Below, piece after piece: positions 4,082 through 61,268 of a stretch of DNA of 64,000 nucleotides. The position numbers were made by a program, and so were the translations under genes. Origin of the DNA: Podarcis melisellensis (lineage: Eukaryota). Below the pieces are notes generated by a model. The model searched no databases. It saw only the letters and a list, made by a program, of their open reading frames with translations, and was not told the DNA's origin. Where the stretch lies: assembly GCA_964234715.1 (NCBI GenBank), contig OZ174281.1; one strand, written 5' to 3'. Every line of letters starts with the position of its first letter. Position 1 is the first letter of the stretch.

Positions 4082-6219
4082 NNNNNNNNNNNNNNNNNNN
4101 NNNNNNNNNNNNNNNNNNNNNNNNNNNNNNNNNNNNNNNNNNNNNNNNNNNNNNNNNNNNNNNNNNNNNNNNNNNNNNNNNNNNNNNNNNNNNNNNNNNN
4201 NNNNNNNNNNNNNTTTTCCTGGTAAAGCCACAACTTCAAAGATCTTAGACATTACATTAATAAAACCTAGCCTACAGCTTCAGAAAATAGACATTGTTTC
4301 ACTTAGCCCCTAGAATCACTTTCCTTGCAAGGTCATTTATAGGACAAAGTTAATAAGAATACAGAAATCAAGGCTTGTGGTTGGGAGAAGGGAAGTAGTA
4401 GTAGCTGTAGAAATTAGTGCCATATTCGGTTAATTTCAGTAATTAAAAAAAAAAACACAAAACCACACGCACAGTTACGTTTTGCCCTGTTTTGACACAG
4501 TGCTTGTTAAATCTTGACATGTTAATGAACTAAGTAGCTTTTCGCAACGTACTGGGCCTTTTTCATACTCCAGTCCAGCCAACAGCATATGGCAGCTTGA
4601 CCCAGTGTCTCAAGGCAACAGCTTGGAAAACAGCGAAGTCCAATAGGGCCTTAAAGCAGCCCCCTTTCCCCTTCACCCATAACTGCAGCTTGCCTGGGTG
4701 AGCTCCGCTTCTCTCTCGTTCTGCATCCCTTCACTCCCCCTAATATTTTCAGAGCAATGGCACAGAGGCAGACTGCTTTAAGGAAAGCTGCTTGAACCCT
4801 ACACTAAGGCTAAGCATCTTCTCTGCAGTGCTCTGCAGTAGCGCATGTAACTAATGAAGGCTTCCTCTGGTTGACAACAGACCCTGCTTTCAGCACAGGC
4901 TTCGTAAGGTGTAGCAGCTGCCCAGGCAATTCAGTGCCATGGAAGCAAAATTACTATTAAATGCAGACCCAAAGGCATTTTCCTGAACCTGCACTCTCTC
5001 CCCTTCAGAGATTTGAGAACTTAAAACAACAAGTATACTAATGCAGAAAGGGCATATTTCATGCCAAGAATAAAATGTACCCTCAAAATAGGTGTGCAAG
5101 GGGTTGCTGGCTGCTATCACGAACCTCGGCAGAGAGTAAGACAAGCTACTGTTTTAATATTAAAATGGTCACCTTTTACATTAAGTTGTTTATGGGCAGA
5201 AAGCATATTCCAACATTTGGTTTAGGCTGCACTTTACACTTCTGCAAAGCAGCTTCACTGTTGGTAGCTTGCAAACATTTGCGGAAATTAAGATGTTGAG
5301 ATTTGGGGAAACAAAGGAAACTAGGATTTGTTTAGAGCAGAGATGGCAGATTTGCAACCCTTGGGCCAAATGCAGCCTCCAAAGCAATTCTGTTTGGCCC
5401 CTGGTGGCCATGCTAAATTTTAAACCAAGGTGTGTGCCCAAGTTTCATCCATGAAGGACAATGAAAAATGCTACTTGTACAGTATTAAATTCACACTTCT
5501 AATGTTTAACTCTTTGGGTTTTGCATGCAGAGTCCCGGTTACTAAACAGCGTCTGTGCTCTATATCTGAAACACTTGCAGCTAGATGATTTAGGCTCTGT
5601 AGGACCTAGCCACCTTACTTCAGTTTGTGGCCATATGCTTCTGTCATTCTCCTTCCTCTGGCTGAGGCCATTTTGGGGCAGGGGAGAAAAGCTGGGGATC
5701 CAAGTCAAGGTGGTTTTGGAACAGACTTTCACATGACATACCGGTAACCCCTTTCCAGGGGCAACCTGTGGCCAAGACACACCTGCACCTTCTACCCCCA
5801 CCCCAACCATAGGGGAAAGGTACGCACACCCAAAAAGATGTTTAAGGGGAAGACAACCCTAGAACATCCCCTCCTATTTAATTGTACCAATAGTGGGATT
5901 TGCCTTAAGCACTGCTGTTGGACCTCTTTGCTGTCTGGCTGATGAGTTGGGCACTATCCTTCTCATAGCTGCTTGGTCAAATGGCCCCAGAAGCCTATGC
6001 ACCAGCACAATGGCTCATGGAACATCTCTCTGACCTACTGCTTCAAAGATGTATTGCTGGCCTGCTCAGAAATAGAACAAAACCCTCAAACATCAGTAAA
6101 AAAAAATCTCATCAGTAAAGGGATTTTACAAATTGGAAGCCACCACCTAGAAAGCCCCGTCAGCAATAAATATCAACTGGGTGCCACCAACAAATCAGGT
6201 CTCCCCTGTTGATTATAGG

Positions 6220-26789: not shown

Positions 26790-28119
26790 ATGCGGGTCGG
26801 GGCTACTGATTCTTCTAGACCTGTCAGCAGCCTTCGACATGGTCGATCACGAACTCCTGGACCACCGCCTTGCCGACGTGGGGATCCAGGGCACAGTCCT
26901 TCAATGGCTGCGCTCGTTTCTCTCTGGTCGGGGACAGAGGGTGGCGCTTGGGGGGGGAATTGTCATCCCGCCACTCCTTGGTGTGTGGTGTGCCCCAGGG
27001 TGCAATACTCTCCCCGATGCTTTTTAACATCTTTATGCACCCCCTCGCCCAGCTTGTCCGGAGTTTTGGGCTGGGCTGCCATCAGTATGCTGATGACACC
27101 CAACTCTATCTGTTGATGGACGGCCACCCGGACTTGGCCCCAGACACACTGATCAGATGCTTGGAGGCTGTGGCTGGATGGTTACGTGGGAGCCGGTTGA
27201 AGTTAAATCTTTTGAAGACAGAGGTCCTCTGGCTGGGACGGGACGACATGGGACTGAGGGGGCAACTCCCATCTCTTGTGGGGGTGCAATTAGTGCCAGC
27301 ACCGTCCGTTAAGAGTTTGGGTGTAATCTTCGATACCTCCCTCTCCATGGAGGCGCAGATTGCAGCTATAACAAAGGCGGCGTTTTTTCATCTCTGCCAA
27401 GCTAAGCAGTTGGCTCCTTACCTCTCTCGCCCTGACCTAGCCACTGTGATCCACGCGATGGTCACCTCCAGACTGGATTATTGTAACTCGCTCTACGTGG
27501 GGCTGCCCTTGAGACTGACCCAGAAACTCCAGCGGGTGCAGAATGCCGCAGCGAGACTCCTTACGGGGTCTTCGCTTAGAGATCACATTCATCCGGTGCT
27601 ATACCAGCTGCACTGGCTCCCGGTGGAGTACAGGATCAGGTTTAAGGTGCTGGTTTTAACCTTCAAAGCCCTATACGGCCTAGGGCCCTCGTACCTACGG
27701 AACCGCCTCTCCTGGTATGCCCCACAGAGGAACCTACGGTCTTCAAATAAAAACACCTTGAAGGTCCCAAGCCACAGAGAGGTTAGGCTGGCCTCAACTA
27801 GAGCCAGGGCTTTTTCGGCTGCGGCTCCAACCTGGTGGAACGCTCTGTCACAAGAGACAAGGGCCCTCCAGGACTTGACATCTTTCCGCAGGGCCTGCAA
27901 GACAGACCTGTTCCACCTGGCCTTTGGTCAGGGCGCAGCCTGACTCCCTCATTTGGCAATCTTTACAAAACTTTAGTCTATGGCTGCCATCAATTTTGAT
28001 TTTAATTCATTTTTATAATGTTTTATAATGTTGTACTGTTTTAGTGTTGTTAGCCGCACTGAGCCCGGCTTCGGCTGGGGAGGGCGGGATATAAATAAAA
28101 CTTATTATTATTATTATTA
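26790..28119 (+). mobile_element. Young 5'-truncated L2 LINE (RT C-terminal half + 3' UTR), antisense in TAF4B intron 1
   Basis: LLDLSAAFDMVDH, GVPQGAILSPMLFNI, YADD, SRLDYCNSL, HWLPV motifs. One frameshift in the G-run near 26950-26957. (TTA)n tail. Confidence 0.93.
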
Positions 28120-31100: not shown

Positions 31101-31339
31101 AAACACCATTTAACCTGCTCAGCACTCTGCAGAGTTTGAACAGGAGTCCCATGTCGTTGTCCCCACTCCCACCCCGATAGCAGAAATTGAAGCTGGGACC
31201 GTCTGCATGAGAATCAGTTCTTTGCCATGAAGCAATCGTCCCTGCTCTCATGTTTAGAAGGCACATCCCACCACGATGCCCACAACTCGCCACTAGTCCC
31301 CTGATGACTTGACCCGTTAGCTGAAAACAAAACAAAACT

Positions 31340-32370
31340 TGGCGGCGCCTGGCCTCATCCAACAGGAGCGCTGCCAGGAAAGGGAGAAGGCAACTCACCC
31401 GGCGGGATCTGGAAGTTCGCAGGTAGCTGTATCGTCACCGTCTGCGGGGCTTTGGGGGCTCCGGGCTGAGGGGCCGGCAGCCTGGTCCCCGCGCCGGGCG
31501 TCTTGGGGAGCTGCTGAGCCGGAGGCGCCCCTTTGCCCGCCGCGGGAGCGGACGCCGCTCGGGGCTGCTGGGCGACGGGAGGAGGGACTCTGCTGAGGGG
31601 AACTTCGGCGCTCAAGGCGACCGCCGCGGCGGGCGGCGCCGTGCTGTGGGCGCGCAGCGCAGCCGGGGCCTCGCGGAATCCCCCGGTCCCATTCAAGGCG
31701 GCGGCGGTGGTGGCGGGGCCGGCCGCCAAGGCAGCGAGCTCAGGAGACCCGGAGGGCAGGACCCTCCCCGGCGCGGCTGCTCCCGGGGTCGTCATGGAGG
31801 AGAGGGCGCGCGGCGGAAAGTGCGGGAGCCTTGCGGAGACTCCGAGCGAGTCCACAGCATAGCAGCCTCCGAGGGAGCCGGCGAAGCTTCCGCAGCTGAC
31901 GATGCGGCAAAAGCAGCGGCGGCAGAGTCCCCAGCGAAACAAGCTGCCTCAGAGGCTGCACCGCTCGCGGACCAAGCACGAGTTAGGGGCACGGCTGCAG
32001 AAAACACATGGTCACGCAGCCGCTGCCGGCTTCTCCTCCTCAGAGGCGCGCACGTGTAGCGCCAGGCACTTCTCGCCTGGAGCAGAAGGCTCCAGCCAGG
32101 ACAGCGGCGCACGCGAGCCGGCAACGCCCTACGGAGCCCCGCGCCGCCTCCAAGACCCGCCCCGAGGAACAGCCCCCAAGCGGCTCCGCTCTCCGTTAGC
32201 CATGTTTATATAGCCACGCGGGGCTCCCCGGCGCACGCGCCCTGGCTCTCCTGGCGGCTCATTGGCTACACCGGGCAACCTCGGCTGGGCGGCGTCACGC
32301 AGAGAGCACGGCCCCCCGCGCCGCTGAAGAACGCCGGAGGCGGAAAGTTATTGGGGAAATCGAACGCACT
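31340..32370. promoter_or_regulatory. TAF4B CpG island, probable bidirectional promoter
   Basis: Very GC- and CpG-rich. Minus-strand TATATAAA at 32212-32205, CCAAT at 32265-32261, NRF1-like GCGCACGCGC 32231-32240, GGGCGG and CRE half-site near 32287-32297, MYB-like TAACGG near 32193-32198. Confidence 0.85.
31399..31795 (-). CDS. TAF4B: TAF4B coding exon 1 (MTTPGAAAPG...RLPAPQPGAPKAPQTVTIQLPANFQIPPG)
   Basis: ATG at 31795-31793 in a CpG island. C-terminal part matches TAF4B RLPAPQ..TTIQFPANLQLPPG. Donor G|GTGAGT at 31398, phase 1. Confidence 0.88.
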
Positions 32371-32436
32371 TGGTGGTTTTCTCTCTCTTACACCCAAACA
32401 CACTCACTCACCGAAGGCGCACGTTGCATCGAAGAA

Positions 32437-32999
32437 GTAAGTGGAGTTGGTAATGCCAACAGAATGCCTATAATTTAGGGATTTGTCCTTTTAAAATGTT
32501 TGCTTTGGGGTGGTGTTTTCTTTAAATTGATATTACTTGGGGAGTCAGCGCAGTGCTCATCCACAGGCACCCCTGCAGCCTTGTAAATAAGCACCCCGAA
32601 AGTTACTAGCATGCAAAGAGGAAGAAGCTTTTGGAGGAGTGAATAACACAGCAGCGTGCTGTTTTTCCGTAAAGAGTGCAGAGGAAGGAAATGGAGCTCT
32701 AACCTTCCACCACCCACCTGCTCACTTTTCTGCATAAAATTTCCTGCACTGAGCTGCATGCATTTCCTTGTTACTTACGGCTTCCAGGCTAGTGGTTCAA
32801 TACAAGTCTACTGTGTTAGGGCTAACTTTTACCAGTTGAAACTCCCATTAAGCATTTTAGAACATTGCCAATTCTGTGTCTGTGGTTCATGCTGTTCATC
32901 ATCTTAATGCAGACCCAGTGTGTTAGTAATTTAATCCTTAAATATTTCCTACTACTATAATTGGTTAACACAATCTAGCATTTTTCTGCTTATCTGCAG
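32437..32999 (+). other. Putative 5' UTR intron joining the TAF4B CpG island to the MCTS1 retrogene
   Basis: GAA|GTAAGT donor at 32437. Branch-like TTAAC 32965-32969, pyrimidine tract TTTTTCTGCTTATCTGCAG ending at 32999. Confidence 0.5.
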
Positions 33000-33015
33000 C
33001 TGCCAATTCCTAATC

Positions 33016-33831
33016 AACAAGTAGAAATCGTGGCTTGGGCTTGAGAGTGGGAACAGGGCCTGCGTGGGAGCTGCTGCTGCTGCTGCTGCTGTCAGTCGCT
33101 GGCCTTCCAGGCCCTCAGTTCTTGGGGCTCTCGCGGAAACCCCAGCAAGATGTTCAAAAAATTTGATGAAAAGGAGAATGTGTCCAACTGCATCCAGCTA
33201 AAAACGTCAGTTATTAAAGGCATTAAGAACCAGCTGATAGACCAGTTTCCTGGCATCGAACCGTGGCTAAACCAAATTATGCCAAAGAAAGACCCTGTGA
33301 AGATAGTACGTTGTCATGAACATATAGAAATCCTCACAGTAAATGGAGAATTGTTGTTCTTCAGGCAAAGGGAAGGACCATTTTATCCCACGCTCAGATT
33401 ACTTCATAAATATCCATTCATTCTACCACATCAACAAGTTGATAAAGGAGCCATTAAATTTGTACTTAGTGGAGCAAATATCATGTGCCCTGGTCTGACG
33501 TCTCCAGGAGCTAAACTTTATCCTGCTGCTGCTGATACAATCATGGCAATAATGGCCGAAGGAAAGCAACATGCCCTGTGTGTTGGAGTCATGAAGATGT
33601 CGGCAGAGGATATTGAGAAGGTCAACAAAGGAATTGGCATTGAGAATATCCACTATTTAAATGATGGTCTCTGGCATATGAAGACATATAAGTGAAGAAG
33701 CAGGAAGAATCCATTGGATTTCAGCTGGGCCTGTTTTTAATTCTTCTTATAAAATGTGTGGCTAAATGTAAAATTTGTGGTGATGCTAAATAAATCAAAT
33801 GAATGCTGGGGGGGGGGAAACAAGTAGAAAT
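33016..33831 (+). other. Processed-mRNA insertion boundaries: TSD AACAAGTAGAAAT at 33016-33028 and 33819-33831
   Basis: Identical 13-mer on both sides of 5'UTR+CDS+3'UTR. Tail position occupied by G10 (33808-33817). Confidence 0.88.
33150..33695 (+). CDS. MCTS1: Intronless MCTS1 (MCT-1, PUA-domain translation reinitiation/recycling factor) retrogene, intact 181 aa
   Basis: Full-length [26 protein letters not shown]...[11 protein letters not shown] with no introns, stops or frameshifts. A at -3 (AAGATG). AATAAA at 33789-33794. Flanked by a 13-bp direct repeat. Confidence 0.95.
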
Positions 33832-43132: not shown

Positions 43133-43425
43133 AGAGCCAGTGTGGTGTAGTGGTTAAGAGCGGTAGACTCGTAATCTGGTGCACCGGGTTCGTGTCTCTG
43201 CTCCTCCACATGCAGCTGCTGCGTGACCTTAGGCTAGTCACACTTCTTTGAAGTCTCTCAGCCCCACTCACCTCACAGAGTGTTTGTTGTGGGGGAGGAA
43301 GGGAAAGGAGAACATTAGCCGCTTTGAGACTCCCTCGGGTACTGATAAAGCGGGATATCAAATCCAAACTACTACTATTCTTCTTCTTCTTCTTCTTCTT
43401 CTTCTTCTTCTTCTTCTTCTTCTTC
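43133..43425 (+). mobile_element. Squam3-type SINE with long (TTC)n tail
   Basis: GAGCCAGTGTGGTGTAGTGGTTAAGAGCGGTAGACTC head, (TTC)n at about 43378-43425. Confidence 0.85.
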
Positions 43426-44899
43426 TGCTTTGAATGACCATCATGGCATTCTCCTTTTTGCTCTGCAAATTAAGGCAAACTGTAGTCTCTGGATGCCCAT
43501 CCACCTTTCTGCAACCTATAATACCACTGGCCACAAAGACTTGGTGACTCAGCTGCAGAAGCTAACAGACATTCAGATGATCAGAATCAAATTGTTCTTC
43601 TGGGTTCCTAACCGGGACATCACAGAATGTAACAATGATAACTGCACCTTCTTTGCTGGGTGCTACATGGTTCAATTTCAGAATGTTTACCATTCAACAT
43701 CTATATATGAGGCTGTTGGCAACATTCTGCAAACTGGAGGCACAGTATTGGTAATGTCTTTGCAGTCTTTCTAGTCTTGAAGTTAGACTGCTTCAATGCA
43801 CTCTTTGCATGGCCAGCTGTAACACTATTAATAAGTACAGTAAAAACAGGAATATACTTGCAGAATTGATAACTGACTACTCAGTGTGAATTTATGGCCT
43901 TAAATTAAAGCAAGCGAAACTGTTTTGAAGGCTGCAGCTTAAACAGGATAATTGTTCTGTCTCCTGCTTTTTACCCTGACATTTGCCAAAACTCATGACT
44001 TAATTTTTTTCTGTTCTATAAAATTTGTTTTTGCTGTCCGATGCATGTGGAGATGCAATATTTCCCCCTCCCCATTCCTTTTTTGATTCTAAAATGAATA
44101 TAATGAAGTACCAATGGAAAGTAATCAGGTAGAAGCGGAGGAAAACCTCCCAAAATACAGTAAGGGCTGGAAGCAAGTTGTTTGCTGGGTGAGGCACCTT
44201 ACCACAAGTAGCAGTTTTCAGCTTACCAACTTATAAATCAGTTCCTGTAGCTAGGAAATTTTTACTTGTGGCACCAGAACATAATGGGACCTGGACCTGT
44301 GCATTTTCCGTTGTTGCACTTAAACTTTGGAATATCCGTCCTTCTGTCATATGTGAAGCATCATGCACTATTTGCTTTGGACATCTTATAAAGACTAAAC
44401 AAGAAATCCTTGTAAGCTGCTGAAAGAACAGGTGGAATTTAAGTAATTTTGTGTGTGTGTGTGTATTATTGTAGTGGAGATATTTCTTTTAACAGCACCC
44501 TGGCTGGTAGAAATATACAGAAGTTTCTCCTATAATTGTGATTCCAAGGCAGAAAAGGCTTCAACTCCTTTGCGGGGAGGGTTGGCAACCCTGACGCGCA
44601 CCAACGTATTTGAATAATTATTAATAATAATATTATTTGTACCCTGCCCATCTGGGTGGCTTCCAACAAAATATAAAAAATTATAAAACCTCAAAAACAT
44701 TAATTCAATTTCTTAAAATGTAAAACAACATTGTAAAATGTAAAATGATTGTAAAACAACAATAAGAACCTCAAGGCGGTTTACAAAAATAAAATTCACA
44801 ACTATACTTAAAAAAACAAAAACAAAAATATGGCATGTGTGTTTTAAATTAATCCCGCGCCCTTTAAAGCCAAGAAGCAAACAGTGCATTGAAGGAGAC

Positions 44900-45750
44900 A
44901 GCAAAGATCCCACTTGAAACGGGACTGAGGGTTTCGCTTAGACGTGCTTTGCCGCACGAGCTGGAAGCTCGCTTTGCTTCTCGCGACTTGAAAGGGAAAC
45001 GCCAGGCTCAGAAAAGAGTGGGCTGGACCAATGATGCGAGGAACTCGGGGGGGAGGGGGCGGGAATAGATCAACAGAGAACTTCTCTCCCGACCGCCCCC
45101 TCCTCTGGGGCTGTAACATTTGTCATCGCTCGAAGGAGGTCGGGTAGGAACGTACCATTGTCGCAGCGAAGGGGTGCGCTCGCTAACAGTCCTCACGGGC
45201 TCATTTTCCGGACGGCAACGGGGACCGTTCCGTTTGGAAACGGAGCTACGGGGAGCTGAGTCGAAAGCAGCGCCGCGCCGCCGGGGCACGGTGGCGCCCG
45301 ATGTCGCCGTTGGCCAGGACGTTGCTCCGTCCCCTCCCCTGTTTTGAGAGTGGCGATGGCTCGGCCCAACGGGTAACCGCTTCCTCCTCCACAGCTCGCT
45401 GCTGTTCTTCCCAGGGCTTTGCCGCCGCTGTCGCCGCTGTGGCCTCAGAGGCGGGAGGGGGCAGGAAGAAGGAGGAGGAGCGGGGAGCCGCCGCGGTGCG
45501 CGCCGAGGCCCGTCTTCGCGCGGGGGCCCAAGATGTCGGTGGCGTTCGCAGCCCCCAGGCAGCGGGGGAAGGGCGAGATCACGCCGGCTGCCATCCAGAA
45601 GGTGGGCTGAGGGGCCTAGGCCGGGCCAGGCTGCCGAAGCCGGGCTGGGGCTCATTACGGGGGGGGGGTGAGGGAGGTCGGCGCCCCGGCTCGCCCCTGG
45701 GGCAGCTCGGGACGTTGGGAGCCCCCAAAAGTAGTCCTTCGCCGTTTTAA
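44900..45750. promoter_or_regulatory. SS18 CpG island promoter
   Basis: CpG-rich region around SS18 exon 1. CCAAT 45028-45032, TCTCGCGA (partial BANP/ZBTB33-type motif) 44979-44986, GC boxes. Confidence 0.82.
45533..45601 (+). CDS. SS18: SS18 exon 1 (MSVAFAAPRQRGKGEITPAAIQK)
   Basis: Canonical SS18 N-terminus, 69 nt, AAG|GTGGG donor. Confidence 0.97.
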
Positions 45751-45929
45751 TGTGGCGCTCTTCCTTTCTCTTTCCCTGTCCCAACACCTCCCCGCCTAAT
45801 GGAGGGGTTGCAGCTGTGGCAGCCCTGCGAGGTAGGCCGCTATTGTCACTTTCCCTAAGAAGGGGTTGACGGGAGGGGTGGAGGTGGCTTGAATATCCAA
45901 CACAGAGCTGCACCGACCTTCCACTTTAA

Positions 45930-46120
45930 ATAGTAGTAGTAATAGTAGTAGTAATAGTAGTAGTAGTAATAATAATAATAATAATTTATACCCCGCCCAT
46001 CTGGCTGGGTTTCCCCAGCCACTCTGGGCAACTTCCAGCAAAATATTAAAGTACAATCATTCATCAAATATTAAAAGTTTCCCTAAGCAGGACTGCCTTC
46101 GGATGTCTTCTAAAAGTCAG
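45930..46120 (-). mobile_element. L2 3'-end fragment with (TAG/TAA)n microsatellite tail
   Basis: Reverse complement of the 57320-57542 element. Confidence 0.75.
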
Positions 46121-58756: not shown

Positions 58757-58904
58757 NNNNNNNNNNNNNNNNNNNNNNNNNNNNNNNNNNNNNNNNNNNN
58801 NNNNNNNNNNNNNNNNNNNNNNNNNNNNNNNNNNNNNNNNNNNNNNNNNNNNNNNNNNNNNNNNNNNNNNNNNNNNNNNNNNNNNNNNNNNNNNNNNNNN
58901 NNNN
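58757..58904. other. Assembly gap (148 N), probably hiding SS18 exon 7
   Basis: Exon 7 sequence (GPPQQYSGQEDYYGDQY..) is not visible between exons 6 and 9. Branch-like CTAAC just before the gap. Confidence 0.6.
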
Positions 58905-61088: not shown

Positions 61089-61268
61089 NNNNNNNNNNNN
61101 NNNNNNNNNNNNNNNNNNNNNNNNNNNNNNNNNNNNNNNNNNNNNNNNNNNNNNNNNNNNNNNNNNNNNNNNNNNNNNNNNNNNNNNNNNNNNNNNNNNN
61201 NNNNNNNNNNNNNNNNNNNNNNNNNNNNNNNNNNNNNNNNNNNNNNNNNNNNNNNNNNNNNNNNNNNN
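61089..61268. other. Assembly gap (180 N), probably hiding SS18 cassette exon 8
   Basis: Gap is immediately preceded by CTTCTTAG|G, an acceptor-like site. Exon 8 sequence is not found elsewhere. Confidence 0.55.

Follow-up and report, generated by a model that had tools for sequence, protein, structure and literature searches.

The window analysed here, a 64,000-nucleotide stretch of the Podarcis melisellensis genome (assembly GCA_964234715.1, contig OZ174281.1), carries an intronless copy of MCTS1 in the spacer that separates TAF4B from SS18. MCTS1 encodes a PUA-domain protein that works with DENR in translation re-initiation and in the recycling of 40S subunits. The coding sequence of the copy (33150–33695, plus strand) is intact, running from an ATG start through 181 codons to a TGA stop, and its product contains a Pre-PUA domain (PF17832; 3.8e-28, 98 bits) and a PUA domain (PF01472; 3.4e-16, 59 bits), both above their Pfam cut-offs. 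The protein shares 98% identity with turtle, snake and mammalian MCTS1, and its Pre-PUA plus PUA architecture and length of about 181 residues place it in the MCTS1/MCT-1/Tma20 family.

Exon-by-exon comparison with snake MCTS1 loci and four lacertid parental loci reveals a full-length processed copy at 33029–33807 from which all five parental introns are absent. Six exon-equivalent blocks follow one another directly on the plus strand (E1, 33029–33160; E2, 33161–33313; E3, 33314–33411; E4, 33412–33545; E5, 33546–33613; E6, 33614–33807). They meet at five intron-less junctions (33160/61, 33313/14, 33411/12, 33545/46 and 33613/14), each of which is occupied by a GT-AG intron in the parental genes of Podarcis lilfordi, P. 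muralis, P. raffonei, Zootoca and snakes; the exon 1 boundary at 33160, for example, is the position of a GTGAGT donor in the parents. The 5′ untranslated region (UTR; 33029–33149, plus strand) corresponds to parental exon 1, contains a (CTG)7 repeat and aligns with its counterpart in the lacertid parents. The (CTG)n tract (33070–33090) varies in length, with 7 units in the window copy, 5–6 in the P. lilfordi copy and 4–6 in the parents. The 3′ UTR (33696–33807, plus strand) carries AATAAA at 33790–33795 and extends to the parental cleavage site: the snake and lacertid parents cease to match at GAATGCT, position 33807, which lies 12 nucleotides past AATAAA, where cleavage is expected.

The insert is framed by two target-site duplications on the plus strand, AACAAGTAGAAAT at 33016–33028 and its match at 33819–33831, identical over 13 of 13 bp and both present at the orthologous locus of P. 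lilfordi. Between the 3′ UTR and the second duplication, the position of a poly(A) tail is occupied by a G10 + A tract (33808–33818, plus strand) that is templated by no parental locus. At this position P. lilfordi shows GGTGGGGAAA (L001, about 5648–5657); because the G-rich tract is common to both species, it is old and does not reflect an assembly slip. Homopolymers of G or C reaching at least 10 nucleotides are fairly common in the window, with 7 in 64 kb. More than a dozen diagnostic bases separate the copy from its parent, and bases specific to the retrocopies occur at 33209 (A), 33543 (A), 33686 (A), 33698 (A), 33727 (G) and 33799 (A). The initial annotation had proposed a processed MCTS1 copy at 33150–33695, and the open reading frame, the two domains, the loss of introns at five junctions and the 13-bp duplication are all present; 33029–33807 is confirmed as a processed MCTS1 retrocopy.

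The same insertion occurs in P. lilfordi. A single contig, OX395132.1 (GCA_947686815.1, Podarcis lilfordi rPodLil1.2), is recorded as the source of the exact retrocopy protein, and there the orthologue has the same target-site duplication, the same flanks, the G-rich tail and an identical protein, the two coding sequences differing at 5 positions that are all synonymous. At the retrocopy locus the window is 93–97% identical to P. lilfordi chromosome 7, which shows that it does not come from that reference assembly. Divergence at the Z-linked MCTS1 locus amounts to 3.3–3.7% between Podarcis pairs, 6.0–6.3% between Podarcis and Zootoca and about 17% between lacertids and Rhineura, and the distance of about 3% between the window and P. 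lilfordi is the ordinary level between Podarcis species. OX395132.1 measures 89,641,981 bp (the scaffold N50, with L50 = 7) and corresponds to scaffold_7 and to P. muralis chromosome 7; P. lilfordi chromosome 7 has an Illumina coverage of 54, which is autosomal. The location of the orthologue on this chromosome and the TAF4B and SS18 flanks retained in the window indicate that the copy is autosomal.

The parental gene, in turn, maps to the sex chromosome. The single-exon neighbour C1GALT1C1 served as the way to the parental loci, because vertebrate MCTS1 proteins all fall together when clustered at 90%. In P. lilfordi the parent comprises six exons, encodes 181 residues and lies on OX395140.1 (51,098,390 bp) at 10.92–10.94 Mb, between CUL4B and C1GALT1C1. 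The sole superscaffold of 44–53 Mb in the pre-curation table of this species is the Z (50.56 Mb; the final Z is published as 50.7 Mb), and Z coverage in the sequenced female is 0.51 (Oxford Nanopore Technologies) to 0.575 (Illumina) of the autosomal level. OX395140.1 is identified as the Z because of the match in size and the half coverage in the female. In P. muralis, mcts1 is placed on the Z at 39,515,115–39,522,836, beside cul4b, and the chicken orthologue lies at chr4:16.38 Mb, on 4p (PMC10901801, Supplementary Table 2). The P. muralis gene sits between mars2 (32.3 Mb) and klhl13/mbnl3 (48.2–48.9 Mb), and all three of these genes have been published as Z-specific by quantitative PCR across lacertids. 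Additionally, the CUL4B/MCTS1/C1GALT1C1 trio is found on chromosomes of 48.7–51.5 Mb in a new P. muralis assembly, in P. raffonei and in Zootoca, and the partial W assembly retained no genes. These data indicate that the parent resides on a differentiated Z.

Several features of the parental region stand beside this assignment. The gene order CUL4B, MCTS1, C1GALT1C1 (head-to-head, then tail-to-tail) is found in 4 of 5 snake loci, and the tail-to-tail MCTS1–C1GALT1C1 pair recurs in every locus compared, from snakes, Elgaria and Rhineura to Zootoca and Podarcis. In all three Podarcis species the Z-linked parent has A126S (CCT GCT to CCA TCT; window 33524–33525, exon 4) at a position unvaried among the closely related MCTS1 proteins listed, and the retrocopies hold the ancestral alanine. 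The UniProt entry A0A670I9B7 (P. muralis, 164 residues) has A126 as in the retrocopy, versus S126 in the P. muralis parent; it also has V132 and V135, and residues 55–72 are absent, W standing at the junction. The entry probably represents the retrogene's orthologue in P. muralis, modelled on an alternatively spliced template, and would otherwise be a third copy; in the former case V132M, the amino acid change carried by the copy, would postdate the split from P. muralis.

The timing of the insertion was assessed from an alignment of the two retrocopies, four lacertid parents, Rhineura, Elgaria and three snakes, in which exon-block columns were concatenated into 651 columns, leaving out the 5′ UTR and window 33314–33352 with the matching columns. 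Taken alone in a first pass, the window copy shares 45 of the 46 substitutions polarised to the lacertid stem. The sole exception, site 33197, is a change private to the window's species, as seen from the P. lilfordi orthologue, and is thereby ruled out as a sign of origin before the Podarcis–Zootoca split. Both retrocopies are ancestral at five sites derived in all three Podarcis parents, A126S among them; bases diagnostic of the Podarcis parents lie at 33524, 33525, 33724, 33761 and 33762. In the maximum-likelihood tree the retrocopies group together (97/99), as do the Podarcis parents (97/98), and the retrocopy clade stands next to the Podarcis parents (75/71) inside a lacertid clade with 100% support. 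Three placements are rejected by the approximately unbiased (AU) test: within the crown of the Podarcis parents (p = 0.012), as a separate insertion in each of the two species (p = 4e-6), and ahead of the split from the amphisbaenian Rhineura (p ~ 0), whose branch in the MCTS1 tree is unusually short. When the copy is forced outside the Podarcis and Zootoca parents, the internal branch has zero length, compared with 0.078 for the lacertid stem. On the parental path, the origin falls about a fifth of the distance from the Podarcis–Zootoca split to the present.

The Lacertini radiation is placed at about 37 million years ago (Mya; Garcia-Porta et al., as cited in PMC7279592), and the insertion would date, with wide error, to roughly 25–35 Mya, near the Podarcis–Zootoca split or on the Podarcis stem. 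The ZW pair is common to all lacertids and has been dated in published work to 85–150 Mya, so that the parent was already Z-linked when it was copied. Loss of CpG in the 5′ UTR was set aside as a clock, since the parental UTRs are just as depleted in CpG. The initial annotation had envisaged an autosomal copy of a Z-linked gene in a lacertid, inserted after the ZW pair arose, and this picture is borne out in each part. The window matches P. lilfordi chromosome 7 at about 97% identity, and the copy falls among lacertid MCTS1 sequences with 100% support; the orthologue lies on a chromosome of 89.64 Mb; the parent belongs to the half-coverage Z of P. lilfordi and to the P. muralis Z table, and is not autosomal; and the insertion arose near or after the Podarcis–Zootoca split, not before the amphisbaenian split, and so later than the origin of the ZW system.

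The copy has been maintained by selection. Eight coding substitutions are found in 163 codons of the retrocopy clade, seven synonymous and one non-synonymous; the latter, V132M (33543), lies on the shared stem of the retrocopies in the last codon of exon 4. Under a neutral expectation in which 74% of the mutational opportunity is non-synonymous or nonsense (kappa = 3), at most one non-synonymous change in eight has a probability of 4.8e-4. Since the window's species and P. lilfordi split, 5 synonymous and 0 non-synonymous changes have accumulated (P = 1.2e-3). Divergence between the orthologues is 1.0% in the coding sequence but about 2.8% in the flanks and higher still in the UTRs, the UTRs and flanks evolving about 3 times faster than the coding sequence, and the 3′ UTR of the P. 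lilfordi retrocopy carries a deletion. The copy is shown to be under purifying selection, with a 181-codon frame intact in two Podarcis species. Because an intact frame and a nearly unchanged protein persist in at least two Podarcis species, the copy is very probably transcribed and translated. V132M is a conservative difference and the sole one from the inferred ancestral lacertid protein; with 180 of 181 residues matching that ancestor, the retrocopy protein would be expected to bind DENR. RNA-like sequencing runs contain 19–22% of sampled words, shares that fit either the copy or the parent, given estimated word shares of roughly 0.14 for parental mRNA alone and 0.15–0.2 for the copy of a congener.

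Within the window, the retrocopy occupies the 13-kb TAF4B–SS18 spacer in the orientation opposite to TAF4B; its 5′ end is separated from the TAF4B ATG by 1.2 kb and from the edge of a CpG island by about 0.6 kb. The coding part of TAF4B exon 1 (31399–31795, minus strand) begins with an ATG at 31795 and is followed by a GTGAGT donor after 31399. The coding range of an 865-residue P. lilfordi gene with TAFH and TAF4 domains terminates at the position equivalent to window 31795, and its product length and SS18 neighbour fit TAF4B and not the paralogue TAF4. The CpG island over the TAF4B start (31300–32450, no strand assigned) has a GC fraction of 0.64–0.78 and a CpG observed/expected ratio of 0.87–1.03 across 31400–32400; it is a candidate bidirectional promoter that may also be active towards the retrogene. 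A hypothetical leader intron (32437–33000, plus strand) would connect the two, with its donor GAAGAA/GTAAGT at 32436/32437 inside the island and its acceptor, ...TTATCTGCAG/C at 32999/33000, 29 nucleotides ahead of the insert. Both splice motifs are also found in P. lilfordi, and because the window and P. lilfordi are 97% identical this conservation is uninformative. Transcription of the retrogene from the TAF4B CpG-island promoter through such a spliced leader is conceivable, at somewhat less than an even chance.

On the far side of the spacer, the coding part of SS18 exon 1 (45533–45601, plus strand) lies in an open reading frame containing MSVAFAAPRQRGKGEITPAAIQK; its final 10 residues match Protein SSXT (SS18; PDB 7vrb) exactly, a hit with a weak E-value. 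A 1.12-kb segment of P. lilfordi (L001, 3567–4686; GC 0.38) is missing from the window near 32830; it falls between the TAF4B CpG island and the retrocopy, within the hypothetical leader intron, and is not repeated elsewhere in the window. At 26870–27943 (plus strand), a 357-residue open reading frame with a partial reverse-transcriptase domain (RVT_1, 8.8e-16) is probably a fragment of a long interspersed nuclear element in TAF4B intron 1. Long trinucleotide repeats at 43358–43534 and 45796–46067, by the SS18 CpG island, give rise to poly-Arg, poly-Leu and poly-Tyr open reading frames that are not genes. Runs of N occupy 4082–4213, 58757–58904 and 61089–61268 of the window and were not altered.

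The proposed sequence of events begins with a processed, full-length mRNA of Z-linked MCTS1 that would have been reverse-transcribed into an autosome by target-primed insertion. The landing site would have been the TAF4B–SS18 spacer, 1.2 kb upstream of TAF4B and in the opposite orientation. The event would belong to the Podarcis lineage and fall close to its split from Zootoca or later, when the lacertid ZW pair had long been differentiated. A functional MCTS1 retrogene copied from a Z-linked parent into an autosome is accordingly the explanation considered probable, and the event itself, a Z-linked parent and a conserved autosomal retrogene, is held with good or slightly better confidence. 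A literature search found no mention of an MCTS1 retrocopy in reptiles.

Several observations weigh against this explanation or limit its precision. The retrocopy has no poly(A) tail and carries a G-rich tract instead. For the window's own species, both the autosomal location of the copy and the Z linkage of the parent are taken over by orthology from three congeners and Zootoca. Only 8 substitutions enter the selection tests, and over 651 columns the AU test cannot separate placement of the copy as sister to the Podarcis parents, to Podarcis plus Zootoca, or to Zootoca. The absolute dates come from published calibrations that disagree widely. Moreover, the exact retrocopy protein has no recorded source in Logan (read assemblies), and the P. 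lilfordi RNA sequencing set comprises non-gonad samples only; expression of the copy is deduced from constraint. The avian and lepidopteran surveys, which show no excess of export from the Z (PMC3242482), lower the prior for adaptive escape.

Two accounts compete for why the copy was kept. Retention of a functional retrogene for reasons unrelated to the sex linkage of its parent, through redundancy or a new expression domain, comes near to an even chance. In that case the parallel with MCTS2 would reflect retroposition frequency, MCTS1 mRNA being short, abundant and often retroposed. Many mammalian 'MCTS1-like' annotations look like retrocopies, and Ahaetulla, where MCTS1 is not Z-linked, has a degenerate MCTS1-like protein with the appearance of one. 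Specifically, the Ahaetulla prasina 'MCTS1-A-like' protein (178 residues) has many changes at otherwise invariant positions and is probably an independent, decaying retrocopy, which suggests repeated MCTS1 retroposition in squamates. The bird and Lepidoptera surveys, in which an out-of-Z excess is absent (PMC3242482), are consistent with retention of this kind, as is mouse MCTS2, with its wide expression and its in vitro redundancy with MCTS1 (PMC11790910). However, the Z share of the genome is small, at about 3.5% (50.6 of 1460 Mb), and a retained retrogene with a Z-linked parent is therefore uncommon a priori; mouse Mcts2 rises as Mcts1 is silenced in pachytene (PMC3107425); and the insertion adjoins TAF4B, a gene that is germline-specific in mice. 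The other account is an adaptive escape from the Z: females, with one uncompensated Z-linked MCTS1 or with the gene silenced in ZW meiosis, would run short of it, and an autosomal copy on the TAF4B germline promoter would restore the supply. This possibility gains from the hemizygosity of the parental Z, the younger age of the copy relative to ZW differentiation, the long-term purifying selection, the head-to-head arrangement with the TAF4B CpG island, the female meiotic sex-chromosome inactivation reported in chicken (PMC2678266) and the precedent of MCTS2 (PMC3107425). It is weakened by the fact that the germline specificity of TAF4B is known from mice only and that this is a single case. 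Because MCTS1 appears to be retroposed frequently and birds and moths show no out-of-Z excess, adaptive escape is ranked as a tentative and somewhat unlikely reading, below retention unrelated to sex linkage. The same doubt attaches to the proposal that the copy was retained since it doubles the dose in ZW females or escapes meiotic ZW silencing.

Two further explanations are far less likely. A neutral processed pseudogene whose frame survived by chance could account for V132M, at a position where the other compared MCTS1 proteins have V, but the copy predates the split of two Podarcis species with about 3% flank divergence and identical proteins, the seven synonymous changes against one non-synonymous change depart from neutrality (P = 4.8e-4), and an origin in the Podarcis parent crown is rejected (p = 0.012); this explanation is extremely improbable. 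Hardly more credible is an insertion earlier than the differentiation of the Z at MCTS1, which would make the transfer one from autosome to autosome. The tree is compatible with an origin just before the Podarcis–Zootoca split, and the lacertids sampled are Podarcis and Zootoca, not Gallotiinae or Eremiadini. Against this, the internal branch vanishes when the copy is forced outside the Podarcis and Zootoca parents (lacertid stem 0.078), and the Z genes on either side of MCTS1 are Z-specific in all lacertids tested, so that the ZW pair is older than the basal lacertid split.

The functional retrogene from a Z-linked parent, which remains the preferred explanation, invites comparison with mammalian MCTS2. 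Both derive from the same parent gene and the same ancestral linkage group (chicken 4p, therian X, lacertid Z), both are intronless, full-length and autosomal, and both are under strong purifying selection with a protein that is nearly parental, as reported for MCTS2 (PMC3107425) and found here for the lizard copy. MCTS2 binds DENR and supports re-initiation (PMC11790910), and Mcts2 expression increases once Mcts1 falls silent in pachytene (PMC3107425). In contrast to MCTS2, which lies in an H13 intron, the lizard copy occupies the TAF4B–SS18 spacer beside a CpG island, is of independent origin, nested in lacertid MCTS1, belongs to a ZW system with the opposite heterogamety and is younger, with an age of tens of millions of years. 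For Mcts2, both imprinting and expression in meiosis are established, whereas the lizard copy is known from its sequence. As far as can be judged, the lizard copy works in the manner of MCTS2, but orthology with MCTS2 was considered and is ruled out by the insertion site between TAF4B and SS18, the nesting in lacertid MCTS1 (100%) and the rejected pre-amphisbaenian origin. The suggestion in the initial annotation that MCTS1 was exported from a sex chromosome twice is supported, the lizard copy nesting in lacertid MCTS1 independently of MCTS2.

As in the out-of-X retrogenes of mammals and Drosophila, the parent is sex-linked and the intact autosomal copy arose after differentiation and was selectively maintained; that class, however, owes its definition to statistics and to expression in testis or meiosis, whereas the lizard case is one gene, in a ZW system, described from sequence only. 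Ordinary processed pseudogenes share its insertion hallmarks (target-site duplication, intron loss, an end at the poly(A) site), but the lizard copy is old, common to two species, intact and constrained.

The lacertid Z and the therian X descended from one ancestral autosome. MCTS1 may have been retroposed from this one ancestral chromosome twice, from the therian X and from the lacertid Z, and kept each time for a shortage in heterogametic germ cells, a reading that is speculative and unlikely. The copy would under this reading be expressed in oocytes and spermatogonia from the bidirectional TAF4B promoter, through the leader 32437^33000, and would compensate, in ZW females, for a Z-linked MCTS1 that is hemizygous or silenced at meiosis, a prospect that is equally doubtful. 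A general out-of-Z bias is not to be inferred from one gene, and an excess of export from the Z chromosome has so far been unseen in birds or moths (PMC3242482). The lizard pair also exposes an annotation trap, the reads and proteins of copy and parent being easily mixed up, as the odd P. muralis UniProt model suggests, and the copy bears on the redundancy of MCTS1 and MCTS2 with DENR. The MCTS1 pair lets export from the Z be tested as a matter of dosage, of female meiotic silencing or of retroposition frequency, and the presence of a conserved autosomal MCTS1 retrogene in both lineages provides a natural replicate of sex-chromosome export under opposite heterogamety.

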